From sequence record NC_061440.1: 64,000 nt of DNA; one strand, given 5' to 3'. Below, piece after piece: positions 1,758-38,855 of this stretch (position 1 is the stretch's first letter; each line of letters begins with the position of its first letter). The notes beneath the pieces are model-generated. The model saw only the letters and a program-made list of their open reading frames with translations. It made no database searches and was not told the DNA's origin. A program made the position numbers and the translations under genes.

Positions 1758-2553
1758 GTTCGAAGGTCCGTACGGACTCACTGAGACAGAGCACATGGTC
1801 CCACGCTGGACGTACCCTGTTAAGCATGGACAGGTTCGTCGTGTTGAAGCGTGGGAACTCGATACGATGCCGAATGCCACGCAGCAAGTGCGCATGGTAA
1901 ACGATATTCATGCAATCCACAGTACACCTGTAGAGGACTACGATGACGAACTCGACCTCGATGAAGAAGCCGCAACGATCTCAAAAACTGAGTCCAGACT
2001 TCTTATCAAGCCTCGACTCAATGAAATCCGCTCCCGTCACAACAAAGACCACATTAGTCCAGAGAACGTCTTCACCGTCAGCGACGAAGTAATTGATGGT
2101 GCGCTGGACAGCATTGACAGCTACTCGGAAACATTCCGCGAGTACCTGATGCACCATGTGTTCAGCCCGATACTTGGGTTTGACATTGCGGCAGGTGAAG
2201 TGGAAGCAATCGCCAAAGACTGTCTCAAAACAGATCTTGAGATAGACAGCGAGCTTGTGCCGTATATCGAGCGCGTAGGGCTTGCTAACGTTCTTGGCGC
2301 TATGCTTACGAAGTCCCAGTCAGTGCCCGAACAAGTACGCGCAGACGTTCTGAAAGACTGGTTAATTAAAGCGTTTGATGACGTTCGCGCAGAGCACAAA
2401 GCGAAGAACACCACCAATGGTCTTCGTGCGCAAATTCGTCGTCTAATGCACGGTAACACCGACCTTGTTGCTAAAGGCACTGGCACGGGTATCGGTACGA
2501 CAAGAGGATTTTCTGAGTACAGGAAACAGATGAACGAGAATGGCCAAGCCTAA
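1750..2553 (+). CDS. hypothetical protein (position suits a terminase small subunit)
   Basis: GTG start overlapping the upstream stop; overlaps the terL start; function inferred from position only. Confidence 0.55.
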   Translation: MSKFEGPYGLTETEHMVPRWTYPVKHGQVRRVEAWELDTMPNATQQVRMVNDIHAIHSTPVEDYDDELDLDEEAATISKTESRLLIKPRLNEIRSRHNKDHISPENVFTVSDEVIDGALDSIDSYSETFREYLMHHVFSPILGFDIAAGEVEAIAKDCLKTDLEIDSELVPYIERVGLANVLGAMLTKSQSVPEQVRADVLKDWLIKAFDDVRAEHKAKNTTNGLRAQIRRLMHGNTDLVAKGTGTGIGTTRGFSEYRKQMNENGQA

Positions 2554-5368
2554 GAAGGGTCCAGCTTTCTCCCTACGTCCAAAACGCATTGCGGCCTTTG
2601 ATGCGCTGCTTGGTGATGACGTACAGGTAGAGGCTTCCGCTGACATGGACTTCTTGTCAGATAATAGTTCAAGTGCGATTAACTTCTTGGAGAAGGGTGA
2701 GGTTAATATCGTTGACTTGGTTGAGGGCGCACTGGAACAACGCACCCTCGTACCACGCGATTTGAAGTTCGACGACAGTTCAATGCCTAAGGCGAAACAC
2801 TTCCTTGAGTGGTGCACTAGTCCCGACTTCCTTAAAGCCGAACCGTATCTTGAACAGGCCTTGATTGGTCTTCGCTTATTCGGAGAGATTTGCGTTCGCT
2901 GCTCTCCTAATCTGCAATGGATGTACACTGAAAACCACGAGCCACAAGAAACAACTGCCGCAATCGAGGAACACTTGCACCTGCTACATAATGGTGTGTG
3001 CCCTCATTGCGGCGCTCGTCGTTCTGAGATGATTCGCAAGAAAGAGATGAACTTCTACAACGAACTGGCTGTGAACGCCGGACAGCGTTGTGTGATTGCT
3101 TCAACTCCTGTTGTGACTTCTCGTGGTATCATGCCGATTGGTCATATGATGGTCGGCCACGACACTCCTGGTTTCCATAAGCCTCGTCGCAACTTCAATG
3201 CGCATAACGGGCGAGAGATCAAGAACGTCAGTCAGGTGTATGTCTCCGATGAAAGCCCAACGAAAGTCGTGACGCTTGCAAACGGCATGTGGATTGAAGC
3301 AACTCATGAGCACCCTGTGCGTACTGAGCAAGGCTTCAAGAAAGTGTCTAAGCTGAAAGTAGGCGACCGTATCGAGATCAAACTCGGTACGAACTCGTGG
3401 GGTAAGATTCAACGTCCTGTATCTATCTATGATGCTGGACTCTCCGTGCGCGAAGAAGCTCTGCGGTATATCGCTGATCGCTCGCTCGCAATCGGAGACA
3501 AGATGCAGTATGTGTCCGATGATGTTGACGCGCTACAGATGGTGTGGTCGATTCTTATCAATGCTGGCCATATGCCTCAAGTGTTACATGACACGCGAAG
3601 CTGGAGCATTGTTTATGATCTCAATGAGCCGCCTGAGTGCCGCTCTCTCCATGTCGAAGTGCAGTCAGTAGATGAAGGCACACCTCAGGTAACGTATGAC
3701 CTACAGATGGAGGGCTTGCCTCAATTCGTAGCGTCAGGCCTGCTGCATCACAATAGCGGTAAGTCGGTCGTGGTAGCGATGATCTCTACCTATCTGACAC
3801 ACAGACTGCTTATGTCGCAATCGCCTACTGGTATCTTGAGCATCGACAGCACAACCGTATTGCACGGAACGTTCGTCGCGCTGACCCAGAAGCAAGCGGC
3901 AGATACACTCTGGACACCGTACTTCAACTATATCATGGGTAGTCCTTGGTTCCAAGCCTATCACGATCTGATTCGCAAACACGAACGCCGTTACGGCATC
4001 GAGGTGATGAAGATTCGTGATACGTTCGTTCTGTACGGACACAGGAACTTCGTTATCTACCCAGCAGGTCCAGATGGTCGTATTCTTCGTGGTCGAACTC
4101 GTGTACTGGCGGTGATCGATGAGGTGGCGTATTTCGACAACGACGCCCAATCCAAAAAGATCAAAGTCAGTGCTGGTGCTGTATACGGAGCACTCGACCG
4201 TTCACTTGCAACCGTGCGAGCGAAAGAGAAACGACAAGTCGAGGCAGGCTACGACGAGGCATTCACGGGCTACTTCTGCAACATCAGTAGTCCGGTACAC
4301 GCTCGTGATAAAATCAATGAGCTGTTGCGTATGTCAGTAGGCTCGGAGAAGCTGTTAGGCATTCATGCTCCTACGTGGAAGATGAACCCTGACATGCCAC
4401 GTAACTCCGAGTTCCTTGTCGAGGCATTCCGTCGTGACCCTGTTGGTGCAGCGCGAGATTATGGCGCAGAAGCACCGTTGTCTGCTAACCCGTTCATCAC
4501 GCAGCCTACGTTTATCGCAGATGCTATCCGTGAGAAAGGTCGTTCGATGTGTACCTACACGCATCATATCATTCGACACAAAGACGGTGAACGCCAGCGC
4601 TACGGTAGTCTGGTAAAAGCGGCAACGACAACCAAAGCGTCCATCCTTGCGATAGATGCTGGCTTCTCGAATAACAGCTTCGCACTCGTAACAGGCTCGC
4701 GTGGTGATGATGGTATTATCAGTGTTGACTGTCTGGTGGAGATCGTTCCAAAGCCGGGCATACCTCTGAACTATACTCTCATCTTTGACGAACTGCTTAT
4801 ACCTCTGTGTAAAGCGCGTAACGTGCGCGTCATGCTTGCTGACCAGTGGCAGTCTCTCAAACTGCTGCAAGACGCCAAGCTGAAAGTTGATTCGATTGAG
4901 GAGTCCGATCAGTACAGCCTGAAATATCAGGACATGTGGACTGTGAAGACGATGTTTGAATCCACTCCATCGAAAATCAGCTTACCGCGCATGACTCACG
5001 CCAACACGATTATGGACACGCTGAAATACGATGGCGATGAATATCCTCAGTGCTTCGAGAACAAACCAACAGAGCACTTGATCATGCAGCTCCAGACAGT
5101 GCAGGACACTGGGCGTAGCGTAATCAAGAACACAGGTGCAACCGATGACTTGTGGCGAGCGATGGCACTCATGGTCTATGGCTTCGAGTGTGGTAACTAC
5201 GACGAGTATCTGACGAAAGCGCCAGAAGTAGCAATCAACCGTGACCCGAATCGCTTGGGTCGTGTGGCGCATAGGCTTAACTCTGGCTCTGCTTCTATTG
5301 GCCGTCCACAGCTTAGTGGTGGTCGTGTTCTTGGCTCTGCGCGTACTCGGATGATCGGCCGTAAGTAA
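2540..5368 (+). CDS. terminase large subunit, intein-interrupted
   Basis: Walker A GQR/SGKS split by the intein, Walker B VIDEVAYF, RuvC-like AIDAGFSNN nuclease motif, N-terminal CxxC...CxxC. Confidence 0.9.
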   Translation: MAKPKKGPAFSLRPKRIAAFDALLGDDVQVEASADMDFLSDNSSSAINFLEKGEVNIVDLVEGALEQRTLVPRDLKFDDSSMPKAKHFLEWCTSPDFLKAEPYLEQALIGLRLFGEICVRCSPNLQWMYTENHEPQETTAAIEEHLHLLHNGVCPHCGARRSEMIRKKEMNFYNELAVNAGQRCVIASTPVVTSRGIMPIGHMMVGHDTPGFHKPRRNFNAHNGREIKNVSQVYVSDESPTKVVTLANGMWIEATHEHPVRTEQGFKKVSKLKVGDRIEIKLGTNSWGKIQRPVSIYDAGLSVREEALRYIADRSLAIGDKMQYVSDDVDALQMVWSILINAGHMPQVLHDTRSWSIVYDLNEPPECRSLHVEVQSVDEGTPQVTYDLQMEGLPQFVASGLLHHNSGKSVVVAMISTYLTHRLLMSQSPTGILSIDSTTVLHGTFVALTQKQAADTLWTPYFNYIMGSPWFQAYHDLIRKHERRYGIEVMKIRDTFVLYGHRNFVIYPAGPDGRILRGRTRVLAVIDEVAYFDNDAQSKKIKVSAGAVYGALDRSLATVRAKEKRQVEAGYDEAFTGYFCNISSPVHARDKINELLRMSVGSEKLLGIHAPTWKMNPDMPRNSEFLVEAFRRDPVGAARDYGAEAPLSANPFITQPTFIADAIREKGRSMCTYTHHIIRHKDGERQRYGSLVKAATTTKASILAIDAGFSNNSFALVTGSRGDDGIISVDCLVEIVPKPGIPLNYTLIFDELLIPLCKARNVRVMLADQWQSLKLLQDAKLKVDSIEESDQYSLKYQDMWTVKTMFESTPSKISLPRMTHANTIMDTLKYDGDEYPQCFENKPTEHLIMQLQTVQDTGRSVIKNTGATDDLWRAMALMVYGFECGNYDEYLTKAPEVAINRDPNRLGRVAHRLNSGSASIGRPQLSGGRVLGSARTRMIGRK
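3089..3754 (+). mobile_element. intein (222 aa) with only a remnant homing endonuclease, in the terminase Walker A
   Basis: Starts CVIASTPV, block B ATHEHP, ends LLHHN followed by Ser(+1); removal restores GQRSGKS. Confidence 0.92.
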
Positions 5369-12266: not shown

Positions 12267-13037
12267 ATGAGCAACGTTGATAAAACAATGCCACAAGGTC
12301 GCTGGGAATTTAATGAGCCAGTTGCTGCTGTCTTCGATAACATGTTGCAAAACTCCATTCCTTCGTATGACCGTATGCGCGACCTGACCTATCGTCTTGG
12401 TCGCCAGTTCGTAACTCCAGGTACGGCCATCGTTGATTTGGGCGCATCGCTCGGTCGCGCTATCGAACCATTCTGTGCTGAGTTCGGCGAGTACCATTAT
12501 ATTCATGCTGCTGACCGTCCCGAGCCAGATCGTGAAATCGGCAATCATTACTGCTGTTATGAAGTCGCACCGGCAATGCTTGAGCGTCTTCGTCAAAACG
12601 AAGTGCTGGTCAAGGCCAAAGCGAAAATCAGTAGTGAGTCGCTGGTTGAAGTCGATACTTTCCGCTTCGACGAGCAGGTTGAGTGCTCCCTGATTCTGAG
12701 TGTGCTGACTCTCCAGTTCACTCCTATCGAACATCGCCAACACATTCTGGAGAAAGTGTACGACTCTCTGGAGAAAGGCGGTGCTTTCATTCTGGTTGAG
12801 AAAGTGTTGGGTGACGACAACTTCCTTGACCGTTTGCTGGTAGACACCTACTACGGCATGAAGGGCGACAACGGTTATTCGCAAGAATCTATTGCGACTA
12901 AGCGCAAAGCTCTCGAAGGCGTACTGGTGCCTGTGAAAGCTGCATGGAACGAAGAACTGCTGCGTAAAGCAGGCTTCAACCGTGTGGAGTGTTTCTACCG
13001 CGACCTGAACTTTGCTGGATGGATCGCAGTCAAATAA
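12267..13037 (+). CDS. cmoA: CmoA-like carboxy-S-adenosylmethionine synthase
   Basis: Colinear with E. coli CmoA as recalled: W.F.E.VA.VF..M...S.P.Y, DLGASLG, TLQF, GG..IL.EK, NGYS, and KR..LE with the catalytic Arg equivalent retained. Confidence 0.88.
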   Translation: MSNVDKTMPQGRWEFNEPVAAVFDNMLQNSIPSYDRMRDLTYRLGRQFVTPGTAIVDLGASLGRAIEPFCAEFGEYHYIHAADRPEPDREIGNHYCCYEVAPAMLERLRQNEVLVKAKAKISSESLVEVDTFRFDEQVECSLILSVLTLQFTPIEHRQHILEKVYDSLEKGGAFILVEKVLGDDNFLDRLLVDTYYGMKGDNGYSQESIATKRKALEGVLVPVKAAWNEELLRKAGFNRVECFYRDLNFAGWIAVK

Positions 13038-13048
13038 GGTAAAACGAA

Positions 13049-14104
13049 ATGAGCGTAAGTGGTGATATTTATAACATCCCTCAACCGTTCGCCATGTATT
13101 GTGGCAACTGTGAAACTCGTGCTCAGGCAAAAGTTGCCTCAGGCACAATTGAATGGGCGTCAGAGAAAGTCTGCTGCGTTGTCGCCGACGATAACGGCCT
13201 GTTCCCTGATGTGCCTCACATCAACATTGCAAGCGTCCATGCTACAGATGCGCGTACTCTGGTAATCGGCTGTGCACCGTTCGGCGGTAAGATTGACGAG
13301 CACATGGACCGCACTATTCGCAGTGCTATCTATCGTGGTCTGAACGTTGCTGCTGCAATGCACAATCGTCTGGCAGACAATCCTGAATACGTTGCGCTGG
13401 CTGAACAGTACAATGTCAAGCTGTACGACTTCCGTCACCGTCCTGACGCGTACCCACTCGGTACTGGTGAGAAGCGCAAAGGCATTCGTCTGCTGACTGT
13501 CGGCACAGATAGTTCCTGCGGTAAAAAGTTCACGACGCTGACGCTACACCGTGTTCTGAAAAAGATTCACGACGACACGGTGTTCTGCTCAACTGGCCAG
13601 ACTGGTTTCCTGATCAGCAATTGCGGCATCAACAACGATACGCTGGTAGCTGACTTCCTTGCTGGTGCCGCTGAGTCCTTATCGCCTGACGGCCCTGCTG
13701 ATCGTATCTATCTGATCGAAGGCCAGGGCGCAATCACTCACCCAGCGTACACTGGCGGCAGCATGAGTCTGATTGCTGGCTCGCAGCCTGACTACTTCAT
13801 CATGTGTCATGCGTGGGGACGTAAGAATCAGCTCGGTGTTAAACGCGCACCTGACCTTGCTTTCGAACTGAAGGCTAATCTGGATGCAGCAGCCATTCAC
13901 GGTCTTACTCCTAAGTATCTGGGCATCAGTATCAACTTCTCCGAGAGCGGCCTGACCATCGAAGAACAAGACGCTGAGATGTGCGCTCTGGAAGACCTGT
14001 ACGACATTCCAGTGTTCGACCCGTCGCGTGATAGTATCGTCATCAAAGAGATGGCCCATCATCTCAAGACGACTGTAATATTCAGGAGCGAGTCGAATGG
14101 CTAA
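13049..14104 (+). CDS. DUF1611 family P-loop protein (DgcN-like)
   Basis: GLNVAAAMH, LLTVGTDSSCGKKFT, STGQTG, DFLAGAAE, IEGQGAITHPAY, GSQPD motifs typical of DUF1611. Confidence 0.85.
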   Translation: MSVSGDIYNIPQPFAMYCGNCETRAQAKVASGTIEWASEKVCCVVADDNGLFPDVPHINIASVHATDARTLVIGCAPFGGKIDEHMDRTIRSAIYRGLNVAAAMHNRLADNPEYVALAEQYNVKLYDFRHRPDAYPLGTGEKRKGIRLLTVGTDSSCGKKFTTLTLHRVLKKIHDDTVFCSTGQTGFLISNCGINNDTLVADFLAGAAESLSPDGPADRIYLIEGQGAITHPAYTGGSMSLIAGSQPDYFIMCHAWGRKNQLGVKRAPDLAFELKANLDAAAIHGLTPKYLGISINFSESGLTIEEQDAEMCALEDLYDIPVFDPSRDSIVIKEMAHHLKTTVIFRSESNG

Positions 14105-14966
14105 ACATCCTCTTCGCAAGCTGTTTGAACAGCACGTAAAGAAAGAGGTCAAAGCCAAAGAAGTGGCCGTTCTGCTTTCGAGTGGCCTCGACGGTTTGGT
14201 TAGCGCACTCGCGGCGCATGATCTCGGCATCAAAGTTCACGCGTTCACGTTCCAGATGGGTGATGAACAGAGCTTCGATAGCAAACACGCTCGCATCGTC
14301 GCAGAGAAGATGGGATGGGAGTTCACTCTGGTTAAAGTGCCGACGTCTGACACTGCAATCGCTAAAGGGTGGAAACAACTCCATGCAAACTTCCGCTGCA
14401 TCAAAAAGCGTGATTATGAGTGTGCGTACCCTATGGTGTACTGCTACAAAGCGATCAAAGATGCTGGCCTGAAATACGTGCTTAGTGGTCTGGTGGCTGA
14501 CGGTTACTTCCTGTATAACCGTAACACGCACATCCAGAAAGTAAGCGGCCCTCACTCTATCGCTGAAAAGTATCACGCGTACCGCACCGAATACTTCCGA
14601 CCGTGGATCAAAAGCGGTAAGAAGTCGCTCGGCGTTGACGGCTATAACCCGAGCGGTATGCTGCAACACGAATTGCTGTGTGACCACTTCGGCCTTGTTC
14701 ACGTTAACCCGTGGATGCAGCCGAAAGTATTTGATTACTTCATCAAGTACACATGGCAAGAGCTAAACATGCCCAAGCAGAAAATGCCAATAACAACGGC
14801 TTGGGCAGATCACATCGCAGTTGTTGGGCATCGTCCACATCGCGGCTATCAAACAGAAGCTGGAGTGCCTGCGCACTTCGAACGCTTACTGGATAATCCT
14901 GAGATCAACTTCAACGGCCGCAAGCGCATCATGGACGTGGCCCGCGATTGGTCAACGAGGACTTAA
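14097..14966 (+). CDS. asparagine-synthetase-like ATP-dependent amide ligase (no glutaminase domain)
   Basis: PP-loop VLLSSGLDG, SGLVADGYF (cf. SG.GADE.F), C-terminal VNPW...V and K.P motifs. Confidence 0.78.
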   Translation: MAKHPLRKLFEQHVKKEVKAKEVAVLLSSGLDGLVSALAAHDLGIKVHAFTFQMGDEQSFDSKHARIVAEKMGWEFTLVKVPTSDTAIAKGWKQLHANFRCIKKRDYECAYPMVYCYKAIKDAGLKYVLSGLVADGYFLYNRNTHIQKVSGPHSIAEKYHAYRTEYFRPWIKSGKKSLGVDGYNPSGMLQHELLCDHFGLVHVNPWMQPKVFDYFIKYTWQELNMPKQKMPITTAWADHIAVVGHRPHRGYQTEAGVPAHFERLLDNPEINFNGRKRIMDVARDWSTRT

Positions 14967-14967
14967 T

Positions 14968-15582
14968 ATGTTTGTACACATCATTGACGGTGGTATTGGT
15001 GGGTCTTATGTTGCTCACCAGTTAATGGAGGCTGGGTTTAAATGTCGCGTTCACTCTCCAAACAACAATCGTGTTCGGGCAGTACATGCGCCGTACCCTT
15101 CGCTTTCTATGGGTCACACTGAACAGGAAATTGAAAAGCATATCGGTAACGTGCTCGGTACGTTTCGCGGTATCTTCCTGATCAGTAGCTACGTGGGTTC
15201 GTTGATTGCAAATCAGATGATTGACCAGTGCGGCCAAAGCGGCAACATCATCACCTGTGACGATCTCAAATGTGGTTCAATACCTGTTGTTGCTTCATCC
15301 ATTTCTGTAAACGTCTATAAGAAGCAAAGACAACTGGCACGTATCTCGCATCGCCTGAAACACTTCGACATTGACCACGAGTTCATTGTCGCGGATAAGG
15401 CTGTGCGTTTTGCTGCTGGTTCGGAGTACGATGAGCACGATGCTCGAAAGGAGTTTAACAACAACGCCAAATTCCTTTCGAGTCCGTCAATGATTGTTGC
15501 TGCACACAAACTCGGTGTGAAGAACAGTATGTACCATAACTATGCGGGACTGGTGCGCGAGTTCCTTGAGAGGCGCCAGTAG
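14968..15582 (+). CDS. hypothetical protein, weak glutamate racemase (MurI)-like N-terminus
   Basis: IIDGGIGG..V (cf. FDSGVGG), APY..S..EQEI, LISSYVGS (cf. IACNTAS); catalytic Cys appears absent. Confidence 0.4.
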   Translation: MFVHIIDGGIGGSYVAHQLMEAGFKCRVHSPNNNRVRAVHAPYPSLSMGHTEQEIEKHIGNVLGTFRGIFLISSYVGSLIANQMIDQCGQSGNIITCDDLKCGSIPVVASSISVNVYKKQRQLARISHRLKHFDIDHEFIVADKAVRFAAGSEYDEHDARKEFNNNAKFLSSPSMIVAAHKLGVKNSMYHNYAGLVREFLERRQ

Positions 15583-20343: not shown

Positions 20344-20731
20344 CGCCAGTGATGCAGAAGCGCGGGCGTACTATCAGAAACAACATGAACGCGCCGAAGC
20401 CACCATGCGAGAAATCTGGGCGTTACGTGGCTGGACGATTCGTTGGGAGTGGCACAACGGCATCTGCGATGATTGTGAGTTCCTGTTCGACGAAACAGGC
20501 AAGCAGTTGTGTCCGTACCACGATGCCATTCCGCAAGAAAGTCAGGTGGCGTACAATCTTGAGAAGCATCGCCTCAATGTGACGTACACCAAGAAATCTG
20601 TAAAATTGATTAACAAGCAAGACCCAAATCCAGTTGAAGGTAAAGCTGACACGTTACGCCAGGCTTATATCAATTGGCTGTTGGCCCTTGAGAAACAAAA
20701 AGCTGAGGAACAAAAGTGCGCCACGACTTAA
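20321..20731 (+). CDS. hypothetical protein with Cys cluster
   Basis: CDDC...CPYH. Confidence 0.6.
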   Translation: MYLPLGDNASDAEARAYYQKQHERAEATMREIWALRGWTIRWEWHNGICDDCEFLFDETGKQLCPYHDAIPQESQVAYNLEKHRLNVTYTKKSVKLINKQDPNPVEGKADTLRQAYINWLLALEKQKAEEQKCATT

Positions 20732-21237
20732 CCGAACTCCCTATTTCCGTAGAGCAAGCAGAGCACATCATGGCCAGTGTGTTTACTCTGGCTGGTGCTT
20801 CTAAATCGAAGCGTCGTGCGACTGCTGCAATGCTCATTCACTTCCACGACGGCTTCCCTACGATTATCAGTAGCGGTGTCAACGGTACTATGCCTGGCGA
20901 AAGCAACGTCATGGAAACTCCTGACTTGACGCTCTCACTTAACACTGTTATCCATGCAGAGGTGAACTGCCTCAATCGCATGGAAGAATACAGTCTGTGG
21001 GCAAACGAACAGGACATTCTGTTCTGTACCGATTCGCCGTGTCCGAACTGTCTGGCTGATCTCGAAGCCGAAGGCGTGAAGACCGTTGTGTATGCGCGTG
21101 AGTATCGACTAACTGATCATCTGGACGCATCTTCGATTAAGATGTTCTGTCTGGATATGAAGTCCGTTGAGCACCGTATGCTTCGCGGTATCGAGCGCAT
21201 GAACGAAGTTATCGCAACAACACCAGCGTCTGAATAA
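20716..21237 (+). CDS. dCMP deaminase family protein
   Basis: SGVNG, HAEVNCL and SPCPNC zinc motifs. Confidence 0.88.
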   Translation: MRHDLTELPISVEQAEHIMASVFTLAGASKSKRRATAAMLIHFHDGFPTIISSGVNGTMPGESNVMETPDLTLSLNTVIHAEVNCLNRMEEYSLWANEQDILFCTDSPCPNCLADLEAEGVKTVVYAREYRLTDHLDASSIKMFCLDMKSVEHRMLRGIERMNEVIATTPASE

Positions 21238-25600: not shown

Positions 25601-25904
25601 CCTGCTGGTAAAGATGTTCGGCCAGAACAAGCCATTCATCGTCGTGCGCCGTGACGCTATCGTGGAGAACGAAAAGCGTTTCGGTGATCGCGTTTACTTC
25701 TCTAATGGCGTTAACACCGTCACTGTGCCAAACATTCAAGGGCTTGACCTGGGTGATAAGCTCTACATTGCAGAAGACGGCGATGTGTATGAGTGGCATC
25801 CTCACTTCGAGCGTCCTTACGAAGCAGTATCGAACAACCAGACAGAAGCTCTGGCGTTTGGTCTGCATCCCATTGTCTTCCACACCGACACACGGAACAG
25901 CTAA
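25560..25904 (+). CDS. hypothetical protein
   Basis: ORF coupled to thymidylate synthase by TAATG. Confidence 0.6.
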   Translation: MPTPVILLKQQTRDLLVKMFGQNKPFIVVRRDAIVENEKRFGDRVYFSNGVNTVTVPNIQGLDLGDKLYIAEDGDVYEWHPHFERPYEAVSNNQTEALAFGLHPIVFHTDTRNS

Positions 25905-27001
25905 TGTCACAACCACTTGATTTACGAAACCCGAACCACTACGAACTGTACTCTCTCCATAGCGTGGACGAGCAGTATATCAACCTGTGCGATGCAATCA
26001 TTGCTACTGGTACGCAAGAGTCCGATGCTGGTCGCACCGACGATACGTGGACGACTCTGATTGGCGTTGGTTTCCAGTTGCAGAACACGCACATTGCTTT
26101 CCCTGCACTGCTGTCCGCACGTAAGAACTGGAGCGCAGCCGTCGATGAGATGTGCTGGATGGCTCGCGGTGAAACGAACATCAACACTCTCGGCTCTAAG
26201 ATCTGGGACGAGTGGGCAGATGAAAGCGGTGAGTGCGGTCCAATCTACGGCGAGATGTGGCGTCGTTGGCCTGACATTAAAGCGTTCTTCGACTACACGC
26301 AGCCTATGGCGTCTTGCCCTACTGCCGATGTTATTCGTGTGCGTGACGAAATTCTGCGTATGCGTCAGGACGGCTACATCGAAACGCAACTGACTGACGG
26401 TCGCATCCTGTTTGAAGGTGAGATTGACCAGTTCGCTAACGCTCTGTATCACATCGAAAACCGTTCGCGTTCTCGCCGCATTCGTGTGCAGGGTTTCAAC
26501 CCAAGCTATGTGAACATGCAGGGTCTTCCTCCGTGTCACACTGAGTTTGAGTTCAACGTAACGAAGTCCACCAAGTACGAACAGGCGCAGGCCGATGCTC
26601 GCGGTCAGACGGTAGCGCAGGACAGTCTGCATATCACTGTCACCATGCGCAGCAACGACTGCCTGCTGGGGCGTCCTTTCAACATCATCGGCTACAGTGC
26701 AATGCACCAACTGATTGCGAAGTGGGCTGGCTTGAACGTTGGTGGCTTTACGCTGAATACGACGAACACCCACCTGTACGATCATCACCGTGAAGCATAC
26801 GCTAAACAGCGTGAGCAATGGATGACGTTGCGTGAACGTATGCAAACAACTGGCGAGCCTGTGAAATATCCTGTGCTCGAAATCTCCGATGATGTTATCG
26901 GTCTGACAGCTAAAGAACTGCTGGACAACGTTAACATCGACTGGTTCGAGCTGGTGGACTACAGCCCGATGCCAGCAGTAAAAGGACGTGTGACCAAATG
27001 A
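25904..27001 (+). CDS. thyA: thymidylate synthase
   Basis: GPIYGEMWR, RSRR, LPPCH, MRSND..LG.PFN (dUMP-specifying Asn), HLYDHH. Confidence 0.93.
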   Translation: MSQPLDLRNPNHYELYSLHSVDEQYINLCDAIIATGTQESDAGRTDDTWTTLIGVGFQLQNTHIAFPALLSARKNWSAAVDEMCWMARGETNINTLGSKIWDEWADESGECGPIYGEMWRRWPDIKAFFDYTQPMASCPTADVIRVRDEILRMRQDGYIETQLTDGRILFEGEIDQFANALYHIENRSRSRRIRVQGFNPSYVNMQGLPPCHTEFEFNVTKSTKYEQAQADARGQTVAQDSLHITVTMRSNDCLLGRPFNIIGYSAMHQLIAKWAGLNVGGFTLNTTNTHLYDHHREAYAKQREQWMTLRERMQTTGEPVKYPVLEISDDVIGLTAKELLDNVNIDWFELVDYSPMPAVKGRVTK

Positions 27002-28969: not shown

Positions 28970-29668
28970 ATGGCAAAAATTGCTAAAACAAAGGAAGGGA
29001 AAAAGAAAAGCGCGATGAAGTTTGACTTGAAAACGCTCAAGACTTCACAACTGAAAGGCGCTGATTACAACCCTCGTTTCATTACAGACAGCCGCCTGAA
29101 AGCACTCGAAAGTTCTTTGGGTAGCTTTGGCGATCTGTCTGGCATCGTCTTCAACAACAGTGTCAAAAGCGGCGTATTGATCTCTGGCCACCAGCGTCTG
29201 AAATCCATCGACGGCTGGAAGACTCGCATTGAGATTCAGAAAGCCTCCGACCAACACGGTACCGTAGCTCTGGGTTACATCCACGCTACGCACCCGAAGA
29301 AAGCCGAGAAGGTTATCAGTATCCCGTTGCGTATCGTTAACTGGACTGATAAGAAAGCCGAGTACGCTGCGAACATCGCGGCGAACGCGCACGGCGGTGA
29401 GTTCGATAACAAGAAACTCGCCAAGCTGGTGGAGAAGCTGGACTTGACCACCATCAAGCCTCAGTTGCTGGGTCTTGACCCACTTGAGATTCGCGGCCTT
29501 CAACAAAAGCTGAAAGGCCAGGCTGCGGTTGTAGCTCAAGAGCGTGTCGGTAAAACTACAGGCCAGATGAACGGCAGTAGCGGTGCGTTCAAAGAGTATG
29601 GTACGGACGAAGTAGGTGAGAGTCTGAACTGCACCTGCCCGCGCTGTGGATTTAAGTTCGAGGGATAA
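28970..29668 (+). CDS. ParB/Srx-like N-terminal domain protein with C-terminal Zn ribbon
   Basis: LKGADYNPR, SL..FG, ISGHQRL, AANIAAN..GGEFD, CPRCGF. Confidence 0.82.
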   Translation: MAKIAKTKEGKKKSAMKFDLKTLKTSQLKGADYNPRFITDSRLKALESSLGSFGDLSGIVFNNSVKSGVLISGHQRLKSIDGWKTRIEIQKASDQHGTVALGYIHATHPKKAEKVISIPLRIVNWTDKKAEYAANIAANAHGGEFDNKKLAKLVEKLDLTTIKPQLLGLDPLEIRGLQQKLKGQAAVVAQERVGKTTGQMNGSSGAFKEYGTDEVGESLNCTCPRCGFKFEG

Positions 29669-29669
29669 T

Positions 29670-31799
29670 ATGATCATCAAGCCGCCTACTATGAAGGAAA
29701 TCAACAAGCTGGATAAACCCTGGCGTGGTATGAGTTTCTTCGCAGGTTGCGGTGGATCTTCTACCGGTCACAAGATGGCCGGTATCAACATCCTGTTGAG
29801 TAACGAGTTCGTGGATAGTGCCCGCGAGTCTTACGAAGCAAACCATCCGACTACTAAAGTGCTGCCGCATGATATTCGTCGTCTGGACCCGAGCAAGCTC
29901 ATGCGTTATTGTGGCTTGGCGAAAGGCGAACTGGATTTACTTGACGGCAGTCCTCCGTGCTTTACCGAAGACACCATCATTCATACAGCAGACGGCATGA
30001 AGTTCATCTCGGACATGAATGTCGGCGATCAAGCAATGACCTCTGTTGGTCGTTACTTCCCTGTGTACGATACTATGGTTCGTCCGTATGTCGGCACGAT
30101 GCACAAAATCGAAACTCTGCTGGGCGCAAACAACGCTACACCAGAGCATCCGTTCTTTGTCAGACGCAGCATTCCTACTGGCGGCTACACTGACCCGTTC
30201 TGGTGTGATGCGAAAGACGTTCAGGAAGGTGACCTGTTAGGTAGCCCGCGCACTACGCCTGACATGGGACTCGACGTGTATCAGTCTCAACTCGATCAGC
30301 TGCCGAAGCAGATTGCAGAGTGGAGCACATTCCCTGAGTTCTGGTGGATGGTTGGACACTGGTGTGATCGCGGTTCGATTGAAACAGTGAGCGGTGTTGA
30401 AGTCGTTAGCTTTGAGTCGCACTCAAGCCTCGAAAACGCAATGATTGAGCAGGCGTTTGACGCGCTGAAAATCAGCAGCCTGAACCGTATCGACACGATG
30501 ACAGCACAACGCAAAACGTTCCGTATCGTTATGGACGCAGAGCTGGTGCAGTTCTTACGCCGATTCGTCAGTCAGGGCAACAACAAGTTCTCTCGTCGTC
30601 TGCCTGCGATTGTCTTCCACCTGACAGTCGAATTGAAGCAACAGTTCATTCTCGGTTGTGCCGGTCATGACTATGTGACTGGTATGGGAACAGGCTTGGC
30701 GATCACCTCAGATAGCCGTCGCTTCCTGATTGAGCTGAACTACCTGTGCTGTTCTGCATTCAACCGACCGCTGTTCGATGGTCTGACTTGGGGCGACGTT
30801 TACTTCGGCAGCCCGATGACTCCGCGTGATCGTAACAGTGTTAAGCCTCTCATTGGCTTCCTGTTCCTGCAGGACGAACACAACTTCTTCCACGAGTTCG
30901 ATGACGCTGACCCGCATTTGTGGGTAGAAGTGATTGAGAACCTCGCGTATCAGGCGACATGTGACGTGTACAACTTCTCCGTTGAGACGGATGAAACATA
31001 CGTTGCAAACAGCATGGTCGTTCACAACTGCAAGGGCTTCTCTACTGCAGGTGTGAAAGAAGAAGGCTGGGGCAAGGAAGTTAAATACAGCGATAACAAG
31101 TATCAGCAGGTTGATGACCTGTTCGATCAGTATTGTCGTATGCTGGAAGGCATGAAGCCGAAGGTGTTCACTGCGGAAAACGTGAGTGGCCTTGTGAAGG
31201 GCGCATCGAAAGGTTACTTCCTTGAAATCATGAAGGAGTTCGACCGAATAGGTTATTACGTTCGAGCACCTATGCTTAATGCTGCGTGGCTTGGTGTGCC
31301 TCAATCGCGTGAGCGTATCATCTTTATGGGTGTACGCAAAGACGTTGCACACGCACTGGGTCACAAGACGGCTGCGGCCGCTGTGCCGAATGTTGTTCCG
31401 TGTGACAGTATGGCATTCCTTGCCGATGCTCTGCCGCATATTCTGCGATACAAGTCCACGAAGAAAGATATCATCACCTATCTTCCTGCGATGAACGGAC
31501 CTATGCCAACGATCACTGCTGCCGACGCCATTGCGTATGAGACCGCGCGATTCTCATCGGCTGGCTTCGTCGAGGACAACAAAGGTCATCGCCGTAAACT
31601 GACCATTGACGAACTCAAAGTGATATCGGGTTTGCCCTCAGACTACAAACTGAAAGGCAAATTCGAAGAACAGTGGGAACGTCTTGGTCGTATCTGTGTG
31701 CCTGCAATGACACACGCAGCGGCTAAAGCGCTCATCGAACACGTCCTGATTCCTTACGCGAAGAAACGTAAGAAGAAGCCAGGCGATATCTTTAAGTAA
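29670..31799 (+). CDS. C5-cytosine DNA methyltransferase homolog, intein-interrupted; predicted carboxymethyltransferase (CmoX-like)
   Basis: Motifs I FAGCGG, IV GSPPC, VI ENV, VIII PQSRER, IX RKLTIDE; motif X reads QWERLGRICVP instead of Q.GN.V. Confidence 0.9.
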   Translation: MIIKPPTMKEINKLDKPWRGMSFFAGCGGSSTGHKMAGINILLSNEFVDSARESYEANHPTTKVLPHDIRRLDPSKLMRYCGLAKGELDLLDGSPPCFTEDTIIHTADGMKFISDMNVGDQAMTSVGRYFPVYDTMVRPYVGTMHKIETLLGANNATPEHPFFVRRSIPTGGYTDPFWCDAKDVQEGDLLGSPRTTPDMGLDVYQSQLDQLPKQIAEWSTFPEFWWMVGHWCDRGSIETVSGVEVVSFESHSSLENAMIEQAFDALKISSLNRIDTMTAQRKTFRIVMDAELVQFLRRFVSQGNNKFSRRLPAIVFHLTVELKQQFILGCAGHDYVTGMGTGLAITSDSRRFLIELNYLCCSAFNRPLFDGLTWGDVYFGSPMTPRDRNSVKPLIGFLFLQDEHNFFHEFDDADPHLWVEVIENLAYQATCDVYNFSVETDETYVANSMVVHNCKGFSTAGVKEEGWGKEVKYSDNKYQQVDDLFDQYCRMLEGMKPKVFTAENVSGLVKGASKGYFLEIMKEFDRIGYYVRAPMLNAAWLGVPQSRERIIFMGVRKDVAHALGHKTAAAAVPNVVPCDSMAFLADALPHILRYKSTKKDIITYLPAMNGPMPTITAADAIAYETARFSSAGFVEDNKGHRRKLTIDELKVISGLPSDYKLKGKFEEQWERLGRICVPAMTHAAAKALIEHVLIPYAKKRKKKPGDIFK
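29958..31028 (+). mobile_element. intein (357 aa) with degenerate LAGLIDADG endonuclease, in the catalytic PC motif
   Basis: SPP/CFTEDT start, block B NATPEHPF, ends VVHN followed by Cys(+1), the catalytic cysteine. Confidence 0.93.
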
Positions 31800-38519: not shown

Positions 38520-38855
38520 ATGGCTCTAAATCATTTGCAGTATGCCCTTGGTCTGTTGGCCAAGGCAAGCGCACAGGTATCTCAGGCAGCACTTGACTGC
38601 CAGCAGCACGGCTTCGATCACGTAGACCCTAAGAGTCTCGTGGCACTGACAGCGCGTGAGCATTTGATCAGCGGTCTGGACGATGTTGCTGCGGCTGTGC
38701 TGTTCGTCGAGCGTGAAGCTGGACCACACTTCGAGTTCGTGCCTGATACTCGTCGTGCGCTTAACAAGATGGACCAGTTGCGTTCTCAGTTAGGCTTCGC
38801 TATTGAATCAGGTCATGCAGAGGGTTACGAGGACGAGGAGGACGAGGAAGAATGA
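38520..38855 (+). CDS. degenerate MazG-like protein
   Basis: LLAKASAQVSQAALDC..HG resembles LAEECAEV.QA..K..RFG with the acidic residues lost. Confidence 0.45.
   Translation: MALNHLQYALGLLAKASAQVSQAALDCQQHGFDHVDPKSLVALTAREHLISGLDDVAAAVLFVEREAGPHFEFVPDTRRALNKMDQLRSQLGFAIESGHAEGYEDEEDEEE

Follow-up and report, generated by a model that had tools for sequence, protein, structure and literature searches.

The gp047 locus

The window analysed here comprises bases 1-64000 of NC_061440.1, the genome of pEa_SNUABM_22, a jumbo phage (Alexandravirus, 265 kb) that infects Erwinia amylovora. Our subject is its gene gp047 (29670..31799, + strand; the cmoX precursor gene), which is annotated as 'hypothetical protein' and encodes a 709-aa precursor with a C5-cytosine DNA methyltransferase (MTase) fold interrupted by an intein. 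The open reading frame (ORF) starts with the ATG at 29670, 1 nt past the stop codon of a ParB-like gene and behind the sequence GAGGGA, and is intact to 31799; its translation over 31590-31720 reads ...HRRKLTIDELKVISGLPSDYKLKGKFEEQWERLGRICVPAMTH.... The precursor matches Pfam PF00145 (C-5 cytosine DNA methylase) with an E value of 1.7e-38 and TIGR00675 with 118.5 bits, above the curated cutoff of 100.65, and it also matches the Intein_splicing and intein_Cterm profiles.

The C5-MTase motifs are distributed over two exteins. The N-extein (96 aa; 29670..29957, + strand) carries motif I (FFAGCGGSSTG), motif II (NEF) and the Asp of PHDI, and ends with the GSPP of motif IV (GSPP...C). It is followed by a class-1 intein of 357 aa (29958..31028, + strand) with Cys1 in CFTEDTIIH, block B TPEH, blocks F/G VYNFSVETDETYVAN...VVHN and a degenerate LAGLIDADG-type endonuclease domain. 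The C-extein (256 aa; 31029..31796, + strand) opens with the +1 Cys (TGC, 31029-31031) and contains motifs VI (ENV), VIII (QSRER), IX (RKLTIDELKVISGLPSDY) and X (GRICVP). An earlier first-pass annotation, made from the letters of the sequence, had spoken of a spliced protein, and the intein that lies in the ORF between GSPP and CKGFS bears this out. The same annotation had pointed to an Arg in motif X and placed its codon at 31689-31691. Reading the frame codon by codon, we found CGT (R) at 31680, CTT (L) at 31683, GGT (G) at 31686, CGT (R) at 31689, ATC (I) at 31692, TGT (C) at 31695 and GTG (V) at 31698. The motif X Arg, in ...EQWERLGRICVP..., is thus the CGT at 31689-31691 (+ strand) within LGRICVP, and corresponds to R674 of the precursor and R317 of the spliced protein.

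The motif X arginine and the match to SpCmoX

The gp047 product is most similar to SpCmoX, the natural DNA carboxymethyltransferase of Synechococcus phage S-B43. When the C-extein alone was compared with the PDB by phmmer, the best match was the SpCmoX structure 8YF3 (E 1e-31), followed by HaeIII and HhaI, and the protein spliced in silico (352 aa) aligned with SpCmoX by BLASTP over its full length, splice junction included, with 36% identity (E 1e-69). R317 stands opposite SpCmoX R350 in both the HMMER and the BLASTP alignment (ERLGRICVP / ERVGRMVPP), and weaker C-terminal HMMER alignments pair it with the Asn of motif X in M.HhaI (FGNSVV, N304) and M.HaeIII (IGNA). The Arg therefore occupies the cofactor-binding Asn position, as the first-pass annotation had claimed. 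In the crystal structure of SpCmoX with carboxy-S-adenosyl-L-methionine (Cx-SAM), R350 stands where HhaI has N304 and makes contact with the carboxymethyl group of the cofactor (8YF3; PMC12783734). BLASTP further places F24, E45-F46 and an Asp of the N-extein opposite SpCmoX F25, E47-F48 and D69, which are the adenine and ribose contacts of Cx-SAM (PMC12783734). The active-site Glu of AENV and Arg of QSRER (QxRxR) align as well, as do FFAG, NEF and HDI, and C97, E146, N147, V148, R190 and R192 are invariant in alignment A2. The Arg is invariant in alignment A1, whose members were picked as Arg-type; it is also kept in 6/6 of the Erwinia/Dickeya/Yersinia jumbo-phage orthologues examined as well as in PaBG, SpCmoX, Mcat8 and TurkishDelight. 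Its retention across orthologues, together with its tracking with a neighbouring cmoA gene, argues against a chance substitution.

Structure prediction agrees with the sequence alignments. The AlphaFold2 model of the precursor, built on 36 aligned sequences, has a mean predicted local distance difference test (pLDDT) score of 82, with values >90 around motif X. Its top Foldseek match is again 8YF3, with a target-normalised template modelling (TM) score of 0.73, and the alignment continues across the intein; further matches are, in order, the endonuclease-associated inteins TliVMA, PhoVMA, PI-SceI and PI-PfuI and then HhaI, HaeIII and M.MpeI. M.HhaI and M.HaeIII share the ten-motif architecture and the catalytic mechanism (Cys attack at C6) with gp047, but they are only 18-22% identical in the fold alignments, have the motif X Asn (N304 in HhaI) and use S-adenosylmethionine (SAM).

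The first-pass annotation had invoked the N374K variant of M.MpeI as a precedent, and the citation is accurate: a cationic residue at the N374 site best supports Cx-SAM use via a salt bridge, and the engineered variants retain activity with SAM (PMC13288465). Our searches gave no residue-level alignment at M.MpeI N374; M.MpeI (4DKJ, 8C56) appeared only as a weaker match to the N-terminal part of the C-extein and as a fold match. The equivalence of the two sites follows from the overlay of HhaI N304 with SpCmoX R350 (PMC12783734) and from the papers of the Kohli laboratory. M.MpeI N374K and M.CviPI Y205K/R, both engineered in that laboratory (PMC13288465), resemble gp047 in carrying a cationic side chain at the corresponding site of the cofactor pocket, where it enables them to use carboxy-SAM, whereas they are point mutants of SAM enzymes and gp047 belongs to a natural lineage with a fixed Arg. 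For gp047, a salt bridge between R317 and the carboxyl group of Cx-SAM is predicted. However, because the engineered K/R mutants still use SAM, the Arg alone is no proof of exclusive carboxymethyl transfer. The proposal that the Arg is a carboxymethyltransferase signature is supported by the alignments, the fold, and the CmoA and CmoY homologues and the association with cmoA described below, but it is not a new inference, as it is the published defining feature of CmoX, an enzyme that the first-pass annotation had listed only for the alignment.

An intein at the catalytic cysteine

The intein is inserted exactly between GSPP and CKGFS, so that the +1 Cys after VVHN would become the catalytic Cys of PPCKGFS. 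The hallmarks of a class-1 intein (C1, TPEH, VVHN and +1 C) are present, and Foldseek matches to solved inteins indicate a Hint fold. The profile for the C-terminal splicing region of inteins (TIGR01443) is matched with a score over its cutoff. Like the LAGLIDADG endonuclease-associated inteins PI-SceI, TliVMA and PI-PfuI, the gp047 intein combines class-1 splicing residues with a Hint domain into which a domain of endonuclease fold is inserted (Foldseek E 2e-12 to 2e-8); in contrast to them, it resides in motif IV of a C5-MTase and its endonuclease acidic residues are not conserved. The exact insertion boundaries are given by an intein-free allele (P0004, 72% identity) on a syntenic metagenomic contig, which reads GSPPCKGYSTAG (GSPPCKGYS); genes for Dam, deoxycytidine monophosphate (dCMP) deaminase and thymidylate synthase lie upstream on that contig. 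The SPPC motif was a filter for CmoX candidates in PMC12783734, and in gp047 it appears as GSPPC, in functional form only once the intein is removed. The GC content of the intein matches that of the surrounding gene.

The intein was present in every orthologue examined (pEa_SNUABM_2, Dickeya AD1, Y3, Yoloswag and Yersinia fHe-Yen9-02), always within an intact ORF of 692-709 aa, and Cys1, TPEH, HN and the +1 Cys are invariant in the six phages. Identity to pEa_SNUABM_22 is 37-88% for the intein and 75-100% for the exteins, and this far better conservation of the exteins implies selection on the spliced product. Pfam, NCBIfam and PHROGs assign the central domain of the intein to no endonuclease family, even at E <= 1, and PDB sequences yielded one marginal bacterial intein-like match and none of significance to solved inteins, so that the fold search alone identified the endonuclease domain. 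An active LAGLIDADG homing endonuclease has two motifs, each with a catalytic acidic residue; at these positions gp047 reads GHWCDRGS and LGCAGHDY, the orthologues vary (CDRGS/CAHGT/VSNGT/VANGS and GHDYV/SRCAS), and the endonuclease fold alone is retained. Relatives such as P0005 keep LGDGW and SADGS there. The variability of the motifs in this clade, compared with the GDG/ADG of P0005, suggests that the endonuclease is probably dead and the intein no longer mobile, and that the intein has long resided in the gene, passed on vertically, and would still have to splice.

It is conceivable that decay has gone further, that the intein on the catalytic Cys no longer splices and that gp047 is a disabled relic without active transferase. 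The degenerate endonuclease, with its varying acidic positions and no Pfam endonuclease match, and the Intein_splicing score, which falls under the Pfam gathering threshold, would fit such a relic. We nevertheless consider it very unlikely, given the intact ORF in each relative checked, the invariant splicing residues and the selection on the exteins noted above, and the occupation of the same site elsewhere: insertions of >100 residues at the SPP/C site occur in 27 Arg-type and 7 Asn-type representatives of 50% identity clusters. As they occur in both Arg- and Asn-type enzymes, motif IV is a recurrent intein site of this MTase clade, independent of the cofactor. We found no report in the literature of an intein in a C5-cytosine MTase; only inteins of actinophage N6/N4 methylases have been described.

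A second intein lies in the same window. The terminase large subunit (942 aa, 2540-5368) contains one of ~222 residues at about 3089-3754 (CVIASTP...LLHHN/S), located in the Walker A loop (NAGQR / SGKS) and matched weakly by Pfam Intein_splicing at aa 226-405. Terminase inteins of related jumbo phages are mentioned in PMC7412058.

Association of the arginine with cmoA

The motif X Arg co-occurs with the gene for the carboxy-SAM synthase CmoA. In a sample of the 80 best IMG/VR loci, we read the motif X residue and searched each locus with 10-kb flanks for cmoA; the patterns used to collect the loci contained the spliced motif GSPPCxxFS, which leaves loci with an intein under-represented in this set, and the frequency of inteins was therefore read from the search of cluster representatives. 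cmoA was present in 67 loci with Arg and missing from 4, compared with 0 and 6, respectively, for loci with Asn (Fisher's exact test, p = 8.9e-7). The Arg-type loci without cmoA include that of a 268-kb relative of pEa_SNUABM_22 (L014), in which cmoA would fall beyond the 10-kb flank. The MTase and cmoA searches of 50,697 phage records agreed in their counts for four genera (Erwinia 48, Dickeya 2, Synechococcus 6 and Streptomyces 2). A further 32 records, of Flavobacterium phages, matched the MTase and were missing from the cmoA results; in Fpv5, the one inspected, the Arg position holds Met. The first-pass annotation had proposed that the Arg links the MTase to a distant cmoA, and the co-occurrence in both IMG/VR loci and phage records upholds this link.

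An exhaustive HMMER search of 1.84 billion cluster representatives for the wider family gave 650 matches at E <= 1e-30. Of the best 150, 89 have Arg in motif X, 42 have Asn, 8 have Asp and one has Lys, and the top 23 all have Arg. The Asp-type sequences (QWERLGDAVPP) fall into eight 50% identity clusters (P0042, P0068, P0078, P0089, P0095, P0099, P0118 and P0134), and the single context inspected, that of P0099 on a phage contig (L094), showed no obvious cofactor gene nearby. The 40-kb, temperate-type Moraxella phage Mcat8 encodes an Arg-type MTase (L008:3698-4768; MGRMVAP) whose C-extein match is 37.5% identical, and this phage is not among the records with a cmoA match; it may depend on Cx-SAM of its host.

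The cmoA cassette and its neighbours

The window contains candidates for the remaining components of a CmoX system, 17 kb away from gp047. The cmoA homologue (12267..13037, + strand), a predicted carboxy-SAM synthase, matches E. coli CmoA (4GEK, E 5.5e-31) and SpCmoA (30% identity, E 7e-29). RefSeq labels it 'tRNA methyltransferase', and the GenBank record of Y3 labels its orthologue 'carboxy-S-adenosyl-L-methionine synthase'. It is followed by a gene for a DgcN/DUF1611-like protein (13049..14104, + strand), which matches PF07755 (E 4e-45), 7XRJ (E 5e-51) and the DgcN profile NF041892 with 279.9 bits, under the cutoff of 480. The next gene (14097..14966, + strand) encodes a cmoY-like PP-loop amide ligase of the asparagine-synthase C-domain type without a glutaminase domain (PF00733, E 5.5e-14; SpCmoY, 33-35% identity, E 3e-49). 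In S-B43, the SpCmoY ligase converts 5-carboxymethylcytosine (5cxmC) to the glycine amide (PMC12783734). At the end of the cassette lies a gene for a 204-aa protein (14968..15582, + strand) with an N-terminal IIDGGIGGSY, a possible dinucleotide-binding motif, and 62% identity to Y3_021. This protein has no match in Pfam, NCBIfam or PHROGs and its membership of the system is uncertain; we rejected it as a conserved fourth component, because it has no similarity to the PaBG gene at the equivalent position.

The gene order in the Pseudomonas jumbo phage PaBG clarifies this arrangement. PaBG_00177, a 'DNA cytosine methylase' with 48% identity to gp047, has the Arg (ERLGRSVPP) and a ParB-like gene upstream; unlike gp047, it carries no intein, and the PaBG genes for ParB, cmoX, cmoA, one small protein and an asparagine-synthase-like protein (cmoY) are all contiguous. 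The contiguous cluster suggests that the Erwinia phage has the same system, divided between two loci at a distance of 17 kb. That CmoX and CmoY are functionally linked is independently supported by a metagenomic protein of 678 aa (P0014), in which an Arg-type CmoX domain is fused to a C-terminal CmoY-like (asparagine-synthase-type) domain.

These neighbours bear on the cofactor of gp047. An ordinary SAM-dependent C5-cytosine MTase that makes 5-methylcytosine (5mC) and tolerates the Arg, in a phage whose cmoA serves another purpose such as tRNA modification or SAM depletion, would account for the canonical fold and catalytic motifs, for the activity that engineered K/R variants keep with SAM, for the 17-kb distance between cmoX and cmoA, and for the GenBank label of the orthologues, 'DNA-cytosine methyltransferase'. 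We regard it as improbable. Wild-type SpCmoX, with the same Arg, accepted only Cx-SAM, and its R350N variant was dead with both cofactors (PMC12783734). The association of Arg with cmoA is near-absolute in independent contigs, and the same genes are contiguous in PaBG. Moreover, no cmoB-type partner for tRNA modification was seen among the annotated genes of the 64-kb window, yet there is a gene for a CmoY-type ligase, an enzyme that depends on a carboxyl handle.

Relatives seem to have exchanged the module that follows cmoA. The DgcN/DUF1611-like gene between cmoA and cmoY occurs in 34 of the 50,697 phage records, all from Erwinia or Dickeya jumbo phages and always near cmoA, and it is absent from the 80 IMG/VR CmoX loci; its product may be a candidate accessory step of the pathway. 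Y3 is without it and has an annotated 'oxygenase' instead. The CmoY proteins of pEa_SNUABM_22 and Y3 (L011:4797-5666) are 23% identical, compared with 82-87% identity for the CmoX and CmoA proteins of the two phages, which hints, from sequence comparison, that the final decoration differs between these close relatives.

Other genes of nucleotide metabolism and DNA modification lie in the same region, including those for a Dam-like N6-adenine MTase (PF02086; 18021-18863), a dCMP deaminase (20716-21237), a long thymidylate synthase homologue (365 aa; 25904-27001) and a MazG-like nucleoside triphosphate pyrophosphohydrolase (38520-38855). We considered the thymidylate synthase homologue as a hydroxymethylase of dCMP or deoxyuridine monophosphate competing for C5 and rejected it, as the protein passes the thymidylate synthase cutoff of TIGR03284.

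The proposed pathway and its strength

Taken together, the evidence leads us to assign gp047, with a probability of about 0.85, as a CmoX orthologue, i.e., a putative phage DNA cytosine-C5 carboxymethyltransferase acting as follows. The 709-residue precursor would excise its 357-residue class-1 intein, as indicated by the conserved splicing residues (Cys1, block B Thr-x-x-His, terminal His-Asn and +1 Cys), and splicing would join GSPP to CKGFS, restoring motif IV with the +1 Cys as the catalytic nucleophile. The phage CmoA homologue would, judging from homology, turn SAM and prephenate into carboxy-SAM, adding to the supply from host CmoA. The mature 352-residue enzyme would then flip out target cytosines in phage DNA and attack C6 with its Cys, and the carboxymethyl group of Cx-SAM would pass to C5 of cytosine while Arg-317, replacing the motif X Asn, pairs with the cofactor carboxylate, if the chemistry follows that of SpCmoX. 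The CmoY-like ATP-dependent ligase would convert 5cxmC to an amide (with glycine in S-B43), and a further step may fall to the DgcN-like protein of this clade. The modification would most likely shield the phage from host restriction; SpCmoX carboxymethylation blocked HhaI cleavage in vitro.

Several observations weigh against this assignment. The region between motifs VIII and IX, including the target-recognition domain, aligns poorly with SpCmoX, and the GC specificity of SpCmoX is thus not transferable to gp047. The cmoA homologue scores 146.6 bits on TIGR00740, under the NCBIfam equivalog cutoff of 193.3, and the PP-loop of the CmoY-like protein is atypical, with SSGLDG compared with SGGVDS in SpCmoY (consensus SGGxDS). 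The 17 kb between cmoX and cmoA departs from most IMG/VR loci, in which motif X is followed by the cmoA start after ~200 nt. The papers searched on Erwinia and Dickeya phages yielded no statement on DNA modification. Finally, a mixed 5mC/5cxmC output is possible, since the engineered K/R variants work with either cofactor.

The divergent target-recognition region could also mean that Cx-SAM is used on a physiological substrate other than phage genomic DNA, such as host DNA, RNA or a nucleotide. We give this the slimmest chance of the alternatives considered. Enzymes of the PF00145 family with motifs in this order have duplex DNA as their substrate, and cmoX is tightly paired with the gene for a ParB-like DNA-binding protein (28970..29668, + strand; phrog_620, E 1e-32), whose stop codon precedes the cmoX start by 1 nt. 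The same pairing exists in PaBG and TurkishDelight, and neighbours with a ParBc domain were reported in 1,660 CmoX contigs (PMC12783734). A CmoY homologue is present as well, and its S-B43 counterpart acts on 5cxmC in DNA (PMC12783734).

Going beyond the assignment of gp047 as CmoX, the variable cassette downstream of cmoA (a DgcN-like protein with one CmoY type in Alexandravirus, a different CmoY with an 'oxygenase' in Y3) suggests lineage-specific amide or acyl decorations. We put forward, as a tentative and rather doubtful proposal, that the Erwinia/Dickeya/Yersinia jumbo phages make a cytosine hypermodification other than the 5-glycylcarboxymethylcytosine of S-B43 on the 5cxmC handle, and also that the intein, which has Cys at both positions 1 and +1, might be a post-translational (e.g., redox-sensitive) gate on the onset of carboxymethylation in the course of infection.

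Relation to known CmoX systems and significance

CmoX, its Arg signature, the supply of its cofactor by CmoA and the CmoY ligase were published in December 2025 along with 5,615 candidates identified bioinformatically (Yang et al., Nat Commun 2025, PMC12783734). Judged by its sequence, gp047 is an additional, intein-interrupted member of the known CmoX family and not a new kind of enzyme. It shares with SpCmoX (8YF3) the C5-MTase fold, the SPPC catalytic motif, the motif X Arg (R350 = R317) and the Cx-SAM contacts, and its system shares partner CmoA and CmoY genes and, as in many CmoX contigs, a ParB-like neighbour. It differs from the S-B43 system in that the gene is split at the catalytic Cys by the 357-residue intein, 17 kb separate cmoX from cmoA and cmoY, which adjoin it in S-B43, the VIII-IX region is divergent, a DgcN-like gene sits inside the cmoA-cmoY cassette, and the phage infects an enterobacterial plant pathogen, not a cyanobacterium. 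PMC12783734 and its supplements, as far as searched, make no mention of Erwinia, Dickeya, Yoloswag, intein or DUF1611, and its 5,615 candidates are unnamed. Beyond that work, our results add an intein at the catalytic Cys that is shared by related jumbo phages, the unlinked cmoX and cmoA, and the DgcN/DUF1611-like gene between cmoA and cmoY. None of these results overturns current understanding.

The sole characterised natural CmoA/CmoX/CmoY system is that of a marine cyanophage, and a complete predicted system is now found in >40 cultured phages of enterobacterial hosts (Erwinia amylovora, Dickeya and Yersinia), in whose records the gene is mostly a 'hypothetical protein' or a plain cytosine methylase. 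Such phages are easy to grow and are under development for the biocontrol of fire blight, and an unrecognised DNA hypermodification would matter for the way they evade restriction, for their behaviour in sequencing and for their host range. Regulation and diversification of the pathway could be approached through its variable accessory genes and through the intein at the catalytic Cys.

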